The notes: a model not told the origin generated them from the sequence alone. A DNA stretch of 64,000 bases from Paraspadella gotoi (GCA_051294375.1 CM119268.1:14873897-14937896); one strand, 5' to 3'. Positions 452-42,941 are shown, counted from the stretch's first letter. Translations and numbers: made by a program.

Positions 452-977
452 ATGGCGACATCTATCGGACTCTTTGGCACGACGCCGGCTGAGCAGACCA
501 AAAGGCCTAACGGCGCTCGGACGGCGCGCTCTCGCTGTCGGCGTCGACCAGCGTTGAATTTTCTCGTCGCCGACGACAAACTCCTTGGCAATGACGCCGC
601 AAACGATGGCATCGACGCCGTTAAACTTTCGACGCCACCAATTTTGATTCTTCGCCGGATTTCGACGACGCCGGTTTGTAAAACCAAAACGACGCCACGA
701 CGTCGAACCAGATTCCGGTTCCAGCTCCCGCCGCCCCTCTGCTTCCTCCTCTTCCTCCTCCCCCTTCTCTCCCTCTCTTCGGCGTCGGATCGCGAGTTTC
801 TCGATCTTTACACCAAAACGTCATCGGCGCCGAATTCCGGCGCCAGAAGCATCAACGGCGTCGGCGTTGGAGTCGTTGACGGCGCCGCCCCGGGACGGGG
901 CGTCGTCGTCGACGACAACAGATGCGAATTGATGACGACGACGAAATGCGACAAGGCCGTCGGATACAACCTCACGA
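452..977 (+). CDS. Frizzled-CRD membrane protein, exon 1 (basic leader, hydrophobic signal/anchor, CRD Cys1-2)
   Basis: ATG in aaaaATGG context; open frame MATSIG...LCFLLFLLPLLSLSSA...RCELMTTTKCDKAVGYNLT; CRD-typical GYNxT sequon followed by phase-1 donor A|GTAAG at 978. Confidence 0.85.
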
Positions 978-2903
978 GTAAGATTCCTTCTTTTGTGTTC
1001 GGCAATCGACGTTCAGACTCATTTGCATTTTGCGGTGTGAGCGATTTTGTGAGAAAAGAGGGGACGATTGGGTGAAAGGATTATTTATGGGTAATGGGAG
1101 CGAGGGCGAGCTGAGTAAAATTGTAGTTTTAAAGCTTTAACCATAGTATAGTACGTATATTTGACATGTTTTTTTAAATTCCATTATTATATTCCATTTA
1201 CATTAATTTAAATATATAAGACCAAAATTAACTCGATATGTATAAATTATTTACACGAGCTACAACATTAATTCTGAAAGATTTCCCTGTTTTATATCGG
1301 ACGAAGAATAAGCGAAAAACGATTTCCTGACTCCGAGGAAAATCGCACGGGTACATCGAGATGGAAAAAAAGATTTACGGCGGGAAAATCTGAGGAACGT
1401 TTAGCGTTTAATGCTGACTGATTGCGAAGCGATGGCATTGAATAGAGTTCCGCTATGTGGGTCAGAAAATTATAATCTCATAGCGTAAAATAGTAATTAT
1501 ACAGACTTAGCTATTTAAAGATAAAAAACCAACGTTGAAACTTTAAATGACAAATTCAATCCCAATCGTCGCCAATAATATAGACTCCCGATGTCCATTT
1601 GACACTGATATATGAAGTAAGCATCGATTTCGCATTAAAGCCATGATAGGTTTTTCGCTTAAAAGCGCTTGAGGCTTGAGGCCACCTCGATACCTCGAAG
1701 TTAGAAACGGCGGTCGGAATTCAGTAGAGGAGCACGACGCGCGAGCGCGAAGTCGCACTGAGAAAAAAAATTCACGGGGCATGGTTCATTTGCATACGGA
1801 AATTTGCTCTTCGGTTTGAGAAAAAAAAAGAGAGGAAGAGAGAGCGAGAGAGGAGAGAGAGGAGGAGAGAGAGAGAGAGAGAGAGAGAGAGAGAGAGAGA
1901 GAGAGAGAGAGAGAGAGAGAGAGAGAGGAGTGAGGAAAACAGAGGAGTTTAAAAAGGGGCAGGGAGGGGAGAGAAAGAGAGGTCAGTCTAGAAGGTAAAA
2001 ACGAGGCGCGAAACAAAAAGAAATTTTTTTAAAAAAAGGGACAAAAAAATTTAAACTTAAAAGAGGAAAAAAATACTGAAAGGATTTGCCCTATTTTACC
2101 CACAGGATAAGTTATGCCTCACGCTATAAACCTCTTCCCGGTCACTCTCTCTTCCTTTCTCTCTTTTTCACGCGGGATAAAACGTAAAAACTACAAAGTT
2201 TTACGACGTAAGGTTAATCGTAAAGAGGGCGGAATTTCACGCTGCAGAAAGTTTAAAGAGTATTGCAAACCAACGCTCATTAACATTTTAACGCCACCTC
2301 GATTTTTTACATTTTTTCAGATAAGATTAAGTTTGGAACTTTGGTACTATTCATACACGAGTTATTTAAAATTAAATTCATAATCTTTGTGTAACTTGAA
2401 AAACGAATTTAAGCACTAAGTGAAAAGAGAGGGGAAAAAAAGAGACAGAGAGGGGAGAGAGGGAGAGAGAGAAAATCTCGAAAAAAACTCAAGACGGTGC
2501 CCCCACGCGATATTCGTTTGACGAAGTAACCTCATGATCGCCAAAATATACACAAACACGAGCTGCTTGATCTCTCTCTCTCTCTCTCTCTCTCTCTCTC
2601 TCTCTCTCTCTCTCTCTCACTCTCTCTCTCTCTCCTCCCTTCCTCACCCCTCTCGCGATCACCCCGTCGGACGATTCCCTCACGTTCCACCGTTTACTCC
2701 GCCCACAGCAATATGCAAATTGGATTTTTGACTCATCAACCGCATAGACTCTCGCTCTCTCTTTCTTACTCACCATAACCATTTCCGCTAACCCCCCCCT
2801 TCGGACTCACCTCACGACTTTCCGTCTCAAAATCTCGTTAATCTTTCCTTCGTTAATCTGTCTCCCTCTCTATCTATCTCTCACTCTCCCTCGCCATTTT
2901 CAG

Positions 2904-3046
2904 AGTTGCCCAACGTTTGGGGCCATCGGGCGAAAGTGGAGCGCGACGAGGACGTTCAGCTCTTCGGCGTTTTGATGAGAAGCGACTGCAGCAAAGACAT
3001 CAGACCTTTCCTTTGCGCCACCTTCTATCCGCAGTGCGATCCCAGG
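2904..3046 (+). CDS. Frizzled-CRD protein, exon 2 (CRD Cys3-5)
   Basis: Acceptor catttttcag-type (CAG at 2901-2903), donor GTGAGT at 3047. Spliced to exon 1 it reads (K)LPNVWGHRAKVERDEDVQLFGVLMRSDCSKDIRPFLCATFYPQCDPR, the Fz-domain PN..GH...C...FLC....P.C pattern. Phase 1 in, phase 0 out. Confidence 0.92.
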
Positions 3047-3053
3047 GTGAGTA

Positions 3054-40508: not shown

Positions 40509-40582
40509 GACGACGACGACGACGACGACGACGACGACGACGACGACGACGACGACGACGACGACGACGACGACGACGACGA
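40509..40582. repeat. (GAC)n microsatellite
   Basis: Pure run; the complementary (GTC)n lies at about 34615-34697. Confidence 0.97.
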
Positions 40583-42901
40583 AGCTGATGATTTATGACA
40601 TCCGAGGAGAGGAAATGAATTAATAAAGACGTCAACAAGGATCTCGATGGCGTCGACCCTTAAATCCAAGATTTTGATGAGTGTTTTTCAGAGTATAAAG
40701 GTTTTTGAAACGAGGATTTGCCAGGATTATGAAAAAACGAAGAGTTTGAAAGTTAAGTTGAAATATTAATTTTTAAAAATTGAGTTCTAAGGGGGGAAAA
40801 ATGAAAATCTAAGCGTTTTAATGATTTTAAACTTATAGACATAATAGTTTTCATTTTTATTGACGTTTAAAATTTTTCTAACTTTATGTATTTTTTAAAA
40901 GAATTTTCAAGACCAAAGAAATCCGGAATGGGTAACATTTAAAAGAGAGATCATTTTTATAGATTATTCTTCCGCCTCAACTGATCCCATGGATGAAAAA
41001 AAAAACCATAATTTAAAAAACGATGAATTTTTTTTTCTCGGGACGCGCGTTTTTTTAAAAACTCAGTTACTCCGCTCAAATGTTTTGGAAGAAAAAGACG
41101 TTAAAAGTCTCGACGAGCGAACGAAGGGAAAAAAAAAAGCTCAAACAACCCATCAATTTACGTCGAGGAGGTTCTCAACGAAAAAATATGGTCAGGTTTC
41201 ACTGAGCGGTGATTCTCTAAGAATTCCCAGTGATAATGTGAGCCGAGGGTGATTCATTGGTGATTCTACGGTTGGCAGCCGTTCTGAGTGTTCAACCGCC
41301 TTCGGTGAGACAAAGCCCTCCAGCGGAAAGAGGAATGAACTTTTTCAATCTCTCTCTCTCTCTCTCTCTCTCTCTCTCTCTCTCTCTCTCTCTCTCTCTC
41401 TCTCTCTCTCTCTCTCTCTCTCTCTGCTTCATTCAACCTCCCGCAAAATGGATGAAAAAATGGCGTGAGAAATGGAAAACCGAAGAAAAACGAGTCTCAC
41501 TTTCATTATATGAACTGCTTGAAGGGATTATGATGATGAAGAAAGAGAGAGAGAGAGAGAGAGAGAGAGAGAGAGAGGAGTTAAGCCTTCTCAAAGAAAT
41601 TCTTTCTAGAGGACGATGGCAGATGTGAGGATCGACGTTGTTACTTTGATTGAATAAGACGGCGCGTCGGCAAGAGGCCTCCTCGGACCCGATTTCAATT
41701 ACAACCGGATTCTCAAAAAGTTAAACATTGTTTTTCACTATTGCTGGTCCTCATTTATAATACGGCTCTACCGGACCACGCGCAATCTGTCGAGTGCAAG
41801 ATTTGCATAGAGATTTCGGAGTTATGGTCTGCTTACATTGCTTACAACTATTCTCAGATCAAGTGCGTACGAATCAAGAACAGATACAACTAATTGAATG
41901 CAGATCTTAGTCTATCTTCAGCACGAAAATCAATTTTAAGCCGCTTCTACGAAGTGAATCAAAATATTTTTAAGAAAATGTATGATTTAAACCTCATCTT
42001 CTCTCCTTTTTTAACAATTATCTCAACATAAAGGAAATGTTTTCAATCACTCATCTCATTCAATTTTTTTAAAACTTTTAACATTAATTTCTTTTTTATA
42101 AATATGAGTATTGAAGCTTCATTTATCAAGTTGTTTATAATTCGGTTCTTCTCCGAATAATTGTGTTCATTTTTTTAATTCAGTAAATCACATTTGCTTT
42201 GCTCCGTCGGTATTTGATTTTGGTTTGTATGAAATAATCGGCGATAGTAATTTTATATCCTTTCTCATTCGTCGTCGTCGTCGTCGCCTTCATCGACGTG
42301 ACAAATCATTGAGACGATTTAAATCCAATTTCTCTTCCTGCCGACGATTCACTATTTCCGGAACCACCCTCCCCTTGTTCCCGCCGCCCCTCTCTCTCTC
42401 TCACTCACTCACCCTCCCTCCTCTTTCTCTTCTTTTACTTTCCTTTCTTCCCTTTCCCTTCCCGCCTTTCTTTTTTTCCTGCATTCAACGTCAGAAGATC
42501 TAAGGAAGACATGTTACCTCCTATGGTGGATTTGTAAACCGATCATCGAACAGATTTTTCAAAAACGTCTTTGTTCAAAAATCTCTCGATTCTCGTGAAG
42601 ATTGAAGATTGAATTCCTCTTCACCGGTTTGTATCTCGTTAAGAGATCCGCGGTCTTTGTTTATAAGTAATATCAAAATCTTGATATGTTTATCGCATTT
42701 TTTTCACTATAGATTAGACGCGATATCAAAAAAACTGTATAATTCACGCGATGTGGTGGTCTGTTCAATATATTTTGTTATTTCGTGTTTTGTATCCTTC
42801 GGTGTTTATGATTTTGTTTTATAAGTTTGTCAGTTGTAATCGTGTCTTCCTCTTTGTTTTCGTTTGGTCAACTCACATTCGCTTTCATTTCTCTCTTACA
42901 G

Positions 42902-42941
42902 GCAACGCAAGATGCACCGTCTGAGATCGGAGCGCCTCTAG
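42902..42941 (+). CDS. Candidate terminal exon of the Frizzled-CRD protein (short basic tail)
   Basis: Strong acceptor tttcatttctctcttacag; the phase-2 join gives ...QKQMQRKMHRLRSERL*. Other phase-2 candidates exist at 42495-42537 and 44192-44282. Confidence 0.4.

Follow-up and report, generated by a model that had tools for sequence, protein, structure and literature searches.

Can a Frizzled-type cysteine-rich domain (CRD) be held at the cell surface by a single membrane anchor, in a protein that has no region for signal transduction? Frizzled CRDs bind Wnt and occur in Frizzled and Smoothened, secreted Frizzled-related proteins (sFRPs), ROR/MuSK, corin, MFRP, CPZ, and collagen XVIII. The question is raised by a locus between positions 452 and 42,941 of a 64,000-nucleotide stretch of the Paraspadella gotoi genome (GCA_051294375.1, CM119268.1:14873897-14937896), the whole of which is referred to here as the window. 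An original prediction, made from the sequence alone, described this locus as a complete CRD followed by an acidic stalk, one transmembrane (TM) segment, and a short tail, and proposed a membrane-tethered Wnt trap or co-receptor of about 640 amino acids. Here, we show that the Frizzled CRD in exons 1 to 3 is genuine and that the exons for the acidic stalk, the TM segment, and the tail are likewise real; no coding sequence for a seven-transmembrane (7TM) region, an NTR domain, or a kinase was found in searches of the window. We lean, by a modest degree, toward a single gene with eight or more coding exons (1, 2, 3, 3b, 4, 5, 6, and 7), encoding a type I single-pass protein of approximately 690 amino acids with a tethered CRD. 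This architecture is plausible, the case for it being a gene prediction in a draft assembly; the original observation is partly confirmed and its interpretation partly supported.

Exons 1 to 3 encode a Frizzled CRD

The spliced exons 1 to 3 matched the Pfam Fz domain (PF01392) over 107 of its 110 model positions, starting at residue 158 of the product, scoring 85.7 bits where the gathering cut-off is 32.1 (E = 4.1e-24). Among all PDB chains, the FZD4 CRD was the best match (1.9e-23), followed in order by FZD7/5, FZD8/2, FZD10, FZD1, FZD3, sFRP3, FZD6, and Sizzled, with Smoothened far behind, and no CRD of ROR/MuSK, MFRP, or corin was found at E ≤ 1e-3 in this search. Identity to FZD4 is approximately 32% by our own count over the PDB-search alignment. 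Both exon junctions within the CRD are independently validated, since the spacing of FZD4 is restored across them (GYNLTKLPNVWGH versus GYNVTKMPNLVGH, with 10 residues between C5 and C6). When exon 3 ends at its good donor, the product contains exactly ten cysteines; C1 to C9 are canonical in comparison with FZD4, and the NxT site is intact. The complete ten-cysteine CRD of the original prediction is borne out by these results, apart from an unusual position of C10 that is considered below.

The only in-frame ATG of exon 1 (AAAAATGG) is followed by a basic N-region of 90 amino acids and then by a signal-peptide-like core, PPPLCFLLFLLPLLSLSSA/SD, at approximately 728-790.

An acidic stalk, a single TM helix, and a basic tail

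Internal exons were searched for blindly on both strands under three requirements: a YAG acceptor in which pyrimidines make up 68% or more, a donor that scores 3.8 or higher, and an open frame no shorter than 140 nt. Lists of open reading frames (ORFs) served as raw material for exon finding only, the window being non-prokaryotic. The plus strand yielded only six loci, which are exons 2, 3, 3b, 4, 5, and 6, in that order, and nothing between 39.5 and 64 kb; the four loci on the minus strand are unrelated. The two acidic phase 1-1 exons described originally are among those recovered, as exons 4 and 5. Plus-strand donors scoring at least 3.8 number 56 in 64 kb, and with so few available, three successive ORFs closing at such donors in matching phase are beyond chance. 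Exons 4, 5, 6, and 7 are mutually phase-consistent, and exons 4 to 6 have pyrimidine-tract YAG acceptors.

Exon 4 is open in its acidic frame only, and the candidate Thr-rich mucin frame and Arg-rich frame were rejected, as both stop before the donor. From exon 4 to the TM helix, the stalk comprises 277 amino acids with an isoelectric point of 4.1, including 78 Asp/Glu residues (28%), 18 Tyr residues mostly beside acidic residues, and no Cys. Ser-Gly sites flanked by acidic residues are present twice in exons 4 and 5 (FVVSGEDN in exon 4) and once more in exon 3b. Exon 6 encodes a TM helix of 28 amino acids, GVSFLVFLALVCAGAILLVVALTCIVLY (39409-39492); reading through its donor meets an immediate stop (QKQM, then stop), and the acceptor of exon 7 (42900) is the first strong one downstream. 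The TM helix is followed by a basic cytoplasmic tail of approximately 22 amino acids, as expected for a type I protein and in agreement with the single TM exon and tail of about 20 amino acids that had been predicted, and ATTAAA and AATAAA signals lie downstream of exon 7. The predicted tail, YNVDANVQKQMQRKMHRLRSERL, contains neither KTxxxW nor an ES/TxV (PDZ-binding) end; likewise, it lacks the syndecan C1/C2 (EFYA) motifs, and no Pfam Syndecan match was obtained.

The acidic runs of exons 4 and 5 consist of triplet repeats that are imperfect (67-72% matches), whereas perfect (GAC)n, (ATG)n, and (TCG)n tracts lie in introns near the acidic exons (34614-34698, 38027-38055, 38253-38287, 39592-39662, and 40509-40582). 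As the runs look like degenerate versions of these intronic repeats, their sequences suggest that the stalk may have grown by triplet-repeat expansion. An internal repeat made up of exons 4 and 5 was rejected (BLASTP E ≥ 3.4), their likeness being compositional only.

It is scarcely credible that exons 4 to 7 are false, that is, chance ORFs running through sequence derived from (GAC)n-type microsatellites. The window abounds in (GAC)n, (CGA)n, and (ACG)n tracts and also in long ORFs of low complexity, and neither exon 4 nor exon 5 has a significant match, be it in the other of the two or elsewhere. However, the blind scan produced no such candidates elsewhere on the plus strand and only the four loci on the minus strand, and the three successive ORFs combine a strong donor, a pyrimidine-tract acceptor, and a common phase 1. 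In addition, a textbook TM helix followed by basic residues lies in frame, and large parts of exon 4 are non-repetitive.

Exon 3b and the frame between CRD and stalk

The direct, in-frame splice from exon 3 to exon 4 implied by the original prediction was not confirmed. Its product of about 640 amino acids can be reproduced as a 643-amino-acid model, but this model omits exon 3b and needs exon 3 to end at 30100, at a very poor donor (G/GTTCCA, 30100/30101) that scores -6.5. The only good donor of exon 3 (CAG/GTGTGG, 30095/30096; score 4.0) is in phase 2 and in frame with exon 3b, and no GT is present between 29990 and 30095. Exon 3b has a pyrimidine tract of 0.95 and a donor, AAG/GTGAGT, scoring 8.1, both the best in the interval from 30.1 to 35.1 kb, and it is written in the same style as exons 4 and 5, with an FPF motif and an acidic run that includes a Ser-Gly site.

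Several observations weigh against one continuous gene for a tethered CRD. The sole usable acceptor of exon 4 (AG at 35145-35146) is in phase 1, while the good donors of exons 3 and 3b are both in phase 2, and the literal mRNA would read exon 4 in its Arg-rich frame and stop inside this exon. No phase 2-to-1 exon was found at strict thresholds in the assembled sequence between 30.1 and 35.1 kb, and loose thresholds gave only an alternative reading of exon 3b. The hydrophobic signal-like segment lies 90 amino acids downstream of the sole in-frame ATG, which makes the true start uncertain. C10 (DRC) follows C9 by 38 residues, compared with approximately 12 in FZD4, an unusual spacing that is due to a Q/E-rich insert, PPPQQQQQEEEKEDLE. 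The acidic exons resemble the (GAC)n microsatellites that are common in the window, and the searches described below found neither orthologues nor other homologues of the part comprising stalk and TM helix.

Phase 1 is shared by the end of exon 1 and the start of exon 4, and exons 2, 3, and 3b together measure 538 nt, one base off a symmetrical 1-1 cassette, which is the usual arrangement for shuffled extracellular modules. We infer that the conflict between exons 3b and 4 reflects either a 1-nt indel of the draft assembly or a short exon lost in the 224-N gap between them, which lies 1.9 kb from exon 3b and 1.4 kb from exon 4. A 1-nt assembly error is credible because of the indel-rich copies of a duplicated block, the homopolymer indels in exon 3b, and the frame switches in a nearby Mago nashi gene, all described in the next section. 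Between exons 3 and 4, no first exon with an ATG and a signal peptide ending in phase 1 was found, and a separate first exon for exons 4 to 7 was rejected on this ground. Because of this result, together with the lack of 7TM, NTR, or kinase sequence downstream, we infer that a single gene gives rise to one mRNA in which the CRD exons are joined to the stalk/TM exons.

If exons 4 to 7 instead belong to another transcript or isoform, exons 1 to 3, with or without exon 3b, might encode a secreted CRD-only protein of approximately 310-360 amino acids with a basic heparin-binding-like tail (...KWRKGRKRKFGKHKPRR, then stop), resembling Platynereis FzCRD proteins or an sFRP without NTR. We regard this alternative as serious but unlikely. 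The frame conflict between exons 3b and 4 is real in the assembly, and reading through the 3b donor leads to an immediate stop. CRD-only genes of an annelid (Platynereis FzCRD-1, -2, and -3, whose products are secreted) and a soluble splice form of vertebrate FZD4 are documented (PMC4669655), and many of our database matches are short single-CRD proteins. On the other hand, the 3b donor is the strongest in its interval, which implies onward splicing, and the read-through stop is uninformative, since any phase-2 GTGAGT donor stops at once. Moreover, the 5 kb upstream of exons 4 to 7 contain neither a start codon nor a signal-peptide exon for them, and a TM protein whose translation began in exon 4 would have no signal sequence.

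The frame conflict might also be genuine, with the premature stop in exon 4 marking a pseudogene or a transcript targeted by nonsense-mediated decay, in other words a decaying lineage-specific duplicate. The premature stop given by the literal assembly, the orphan long-branch CRD with no more than 39% identity to any match, and the failure of the searches to find an orthologue would all fit such a history. We nevertheless consider it quite improbable: long open frames and good splice sites are retained in all exons, only one frame of the 408-nt exon 4 is open, the ten CRD cysteines and the NxT site are intact, and assembly indel errors are evident independently.

Apart from these alternatives, skipping of exons 2 to 3b could yield an in-frame product consisting of signal peptide, stalk, and TM helix minus most of the CRD.

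Indel errors in the assembly

The window is a segment of a draft animal genome, with approximately 40% GC, 10 runs of N, and numerous microsatellites of the (GA)n, (GAC)n, and (ATTG)n types. Two tandem blocks of 10.6 kb, separated by a 25-N gap, duplicate one another (Table 1). Over 4.1 kb of intron compared, their copies differ by 138 gap openings versus 36 mismatches, and this indel-to-substitution ratio of approximately 4:1 is the signature of unpolished long reads rather than of evolution. Most likely, the blocks represent one locus assembled twice, with one copy unpolished, in which case the true intron 2 would be approximately 16 kb long. The frame-broken second copies of exons 3 and 3b are best read in the same way; the copies of exon 3b differ by three single-base homopolymer deletions.

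Damage of a similar kind is found in a Mago nashi gene on the plus strand (62240-62760; Pfam E = 2e-32), shortly upstream of another 25-N gap. Its longest in-frame piece has approximately 88% amino acid identity to the conserved protein by our own count from the alignment, and a short intron is kept after ...ELKR, yet the frame switches repeatedly. As its pieces stay close to the conserved protein, the pattern is more that of an essential gene disrupted by indel errors of the assembly than that of a pseudogene. Such errors are thus frequent in some stretches of the assembly, above all close to contig ends.

Table 1. Coding exons of the predicted gene, and assembly features, in the window
Feature	Position	Strand	Description
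Exon 1	452-977	+	N-region, signal-like core, start of the CRD (C1, C2, GYNLT); donor CGA/GTAAGA, phase 1
Exon 2	2904-3046	+	Middle of the CRD (KLPNVWGH...C3, C4, C5...DPR); phase 1 to 0; acceptor TTTTCAG/AG, donor AGG/GTGAGT
Exon 3	29848-30095	+	CRD C6-C9, Q/E-rich insert, C10 (DRC); phase-0 start TTTTTTTTAG/GAC; donor CAG/GTGTGG, phase 2
Exon 3b	31525-31671	+	147 nt; phase 2-2; encodes (R)YPRVPDETEISSFPFSPPREEEDDEDEAGSGEKWRKGRKRKFGKHKPR
Exon 4	35147-35554	+	Acidic Tyr-rich stalk; 408 nt; phase 1-1; donor GTTAGT
Exon 5	37264-37575	+	Second acidic stalk exon; phase 1-1; donor ACG/GTAAGT; contains YVISGEQDNDDEDD and SSYDYKEFPFYEQRD
Exon 6	39272-39521	+	Ser/Pro-rich juxtamembrane region, TM helix, start of tail; phase 1 to 2; donor AAT/GTGAGT
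Exon 7	42902-42941	+	End of basic tail, (M)QRKMHRLRSERL, then stop; product given as MQRKMHRLRSERL, then stop
Tandem 10.6-kb blocks	11081-21648 and 21674-32514		Self-duplicate, with 25-N gap (21649-21673) between
Degraded second copy of exon 3	19108-19338	+	Many 1-2 nt indels, broken frame; in first block of the duplicated segment
Degraded second copy of exon 3b	20710-20845	+	Three 1-nt homopolymer deletions versus the copy at 31.5 kb
Assembly gap, 224 N	33537-33760		Between exons 3b and 4; might conceal a short exon or reflect contig ends of low quality

Search of the window for domains of other CRD proteins

Plus-strand ORFs of at least 35 amino acids between 30.1 and 64 kb, with low-complexity ORFs filtered out, were scanned against Pfam. 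No Frizzled 7TM region (PF01534) and no NTR, kringle, Ig, kinase, CUB, or LDLa domain was found there, the only match being Mago_nashi. Likewise, a tblastn search of both strands of the 64 kb with seven full-length 7TM Frizzleds matched exons 2 and 3 only. The claim that the locus has neither a 7TM nor a kinase region stands on these searches.

An ordinary Fz4-like Frizzled, whose 7TM exons would lie outside the window or in its gaps, and for which exons 3b to 7 would be a nested gene or false exons, would agree with FZD4 CRDs being the closest solved relatives, with the large introns, and with the window ending 21 kb past exon 7. It is very improbable all the same, as the two 7TM searches were empty, the CRD shares only about a third of its residues with FZD4 and does not stand among the 7TM Frizzleds in the tree described below, six consecutive same-strand exons would have to be ignored, and a Mago nashi gene follows downstream on the same strand.

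Relatives of the CRD

Word-indexed searches of 5.8 billion proteins returned no match for the 643-amino-acid model (CRD region), for exons 1 to 3, or for the exon-4 ORF, and a scan of metagenomes for another copy of the locus, with flanks of 10 kb, was negative. When the exon-3 peptide was compared exhaustively with 1.84 billion representatives by HMMER, 135 matches were obtained, with no orthologue among them. Rescored with the whole CRD, the best match domains reached 80-94 bits, no better than human FZD4, and the highest identity of the window CRD to any match was 39%. In a tree of 130 CRDs, built without a curated Frizzled-subfamily reference set, the window CRD was an unplaced long branch that belonged to no supported clade and did not group with the 7TM Frizzleds. 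The C-terminal 335 amino acids, compared with 191 retrieved proteins by phmmer and BLASTP, matched nothing better than E ~0.15. The lineage-specific origin suggested originally is compatible with the lack of an orthologue in these searches, although relatives may simply be absent from the databases.

Most of the 135 matches have 2-13 tandem CRDs (9 in a Montipora protein), and approximately 25 end in a TM helix or in a terminal hydrophobic segment resembling a glycosylphosphatidylinositol signal. The tandem-CRD matches come from hemichordates, corals, and ocean or other metagenome samples, and all the named ones are annotated as uncharacterized; a lamprey FZD4-like protein is also among the named matches. 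These sequences show that membrane-anchored CRD proteins occur beyond the classical families, and the combination of one or more CRDs with a single TM helix is not unprecedented, though the stalks are unrelated. A targeted literature search found no characterized protein with a single CRD and a single TM helix. The architecture, which had not been recognized among known CRD proteins in the original prediction, accordingly has no characterized match in the literature but does have uncharacterized CRD proteins with a single TM helix or anchor in the databases.

Comparison with known CRD proteins and proteoglycans

The Frizzled-4 CRD is the best sequence match to the CRD of the window, with which it shares the ten-cysteine framework, the GYN(L/V)TK(L/M)PN motif, which provides an N-glycosylation site after C2, and the C5-C6 spacing. 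Beyond the low identity and the wider C9-C10 interval already described, the window gene differs from Frizzled-4 in lacking the 7TM region, the KTxxxW motif, and the PDZ motif, its CRD being followed by an acidic stalk and one TM helix. ROR/MuSK, MFRP, and corin likewise present a Frizzled CRD on a single-pass membrane protein. However, ROR/MuSK have Ig, kringle, and kinase domains, and MFRP and corin, both of type II topology, contain CUB, LDLa, or protease domains; no domain of either set was found in the window gene.

Syndecans and glypicans concentrate Wnts at the membrane, and a purely functional analogy may be drawn with them. Syndecans combine an acidic ectodomain and Ser-Gly sites with a short tail, and glypicans combine these with a CRD-like fold. 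There is no sequence relationship to either family: the window gene has neither EFYA nor the glypican fold, and attachment of glycosaminoglycan (GAG) chains to its product is conjecture.

The sFRPs and the Platynereis FzCRD proteins have a Frizzled-type CRD without a 7TM region and presumably modulate Wnt by ligand binding. The FzCRD genes, lineage-restricted orphans that arose by CRD duplication (PMC4669655), may be likened to the window gene in this respect. In contrast to the sFRPs with their NTR domain, which was not found in the window gene, and to FzCRD-1, a secreted protein of 208 amino acids (PMC4669655), the window gene probably adds a polyanionic stalk of 330 amino acids, a TM helix, and a cytoplasmic tail.

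Closer to the predicted architecture are several uncharacterized proteins. Saccoglossus kowalevskii LOC102805162 (XP_006819459) has five CRDs, Sushi and EGF domains, a TM helix, and a tail of approximately 150 amino acids; Glandiceps talaboti XP_077999276 and Ptychodera flava XP_070545293 are further multi-CRD single-pass proteins; and a protein on the TARA ocean plankton scaffold ERZ28655232 consists of two CRDs, a TM helix, and a 34-amino-acid tail. As in the window gene, the CRDs of the hemichordate and TARA proteins lie outside the cell, followed by one TM helix and a non-catalytic tail, and no 7TM region is present. They differ from it in having 2-5 CRDs, in the Sushi and EGF domains of the hemichordate proteins, in dissimilar regions after the CRDs, and in a CRD identity of at most 39%. 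The highest local identity to the CRD half encoded by exon 3, 60% over 35 amino acids, was found in Macrostomum lignano PAA55948, in which a single CRD is also followed by an acidic Ser-Gly repeat, (DRDGSGSA)n. Its 253-amino-acid model, however, has no TM helix and only the C-terminal half of the CRD, and its repeat is unrelated.

A model for a membrane-tethered CRD

The single-gene reading, which we prefer, predicts a protein composed, in order, of a signal peptide, a divergent Frizzled-type CRD, a Cys-free disordered polyanionic stalk of approximately 330 amino acids, a TM helix, and a basic tail of approximately 22 amino acids. After cleavage of the signal peptide behind PPPLCFLLFLLPLLSLSSA, the CRD would be displayed some 330 disordered residues above the membrane, where Wnt in its lipidated form, or some other CRD ligand, could be bound at the cell surface. 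Having no transducing domain, the protein would hold this ligand on the cell that produces it. Ligand binding without Frizzled-like transduction would imply a cell-autonomous action, with the protein serving as a tethered decoy or, alternatively, as a co-receptor that presents the ligand; the role as a Wnt trap or co-receptor proposed originally is suggested by domain content only. Tyr residues flanked by acidic residues and Ser-Gly dipeptides in acidic surroundings are the consensus contexts of tyrosine sulfation and GAG attachment, respectively. The stalk may therefore carry sulfotyrosine and/or GAG chains, which would add electrostatic affinity for basic morphogens.

We tentatively suggest, as a possibility that we would not put at even chances, that the gene represents an undescribed class of Wnt-pathway surface proteins with a single CRD, a sulfated or GAG-bearing polyanionic stalk, one TM helix, and no transducer. 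Such a protein would be a membrane-tethered hybrid of an sFRP and a proteoglycan, assembled from a duplicated CRD cassette and (GAC)n-derived exons, that sequesters or presents Wnt cell-autonomously. If so, it would be a natural membrane-bound decoy or co-receptor form of the Frizzled ligand-binding domain. Tethered CRD decoys have already been built artificially in Wnt research; to our knowledge, this design is not found among the characterized CRD families. It would also provide a cell-autonomous way to shape Wnt gradients in this lineage, and a clear example of a receptor-like gene made from a duplicated domain cassette and repeat-derived exons. The CRD proteins with a single TM helix, mostly multi-CRD, that are scattered among hemichordates, marine plankton, and metagenomes are unstudied and offer a broader lead than the locus itself.

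Other features of the window

An Rfam scan of the window gave no match. A second duplicate pair, of approximately 600 bp and 95% identical (44949-45548 and 45592-46192), flanks a 25-N gap (45549-45573) and appears to be an unmerged contig overlap of the same kind as the 10.6-kb blocks; exon-like ORFs are present on the minus strand of both copies (45008-45271 and 45647-45918). On the plus strand, a GC-rich, A-skewed stretch of 4 kb (57300-61700) contains many Lys/Glu/Arg-rich ORF fragments that lie side by side and alternate in frame (such as EALEKNIKELKKALRRE), with no Pfam match. Either an intronless gene for a coiled-coil protein or the ORF of a mobile element may lie there, interrupted by indel errors like those described above. 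A dispersed repeat of approximately 300 bp, 86% identical, is located at 54679-54958 and 63417-63721, the second copy directly following a 25-N gap (63390-63414).

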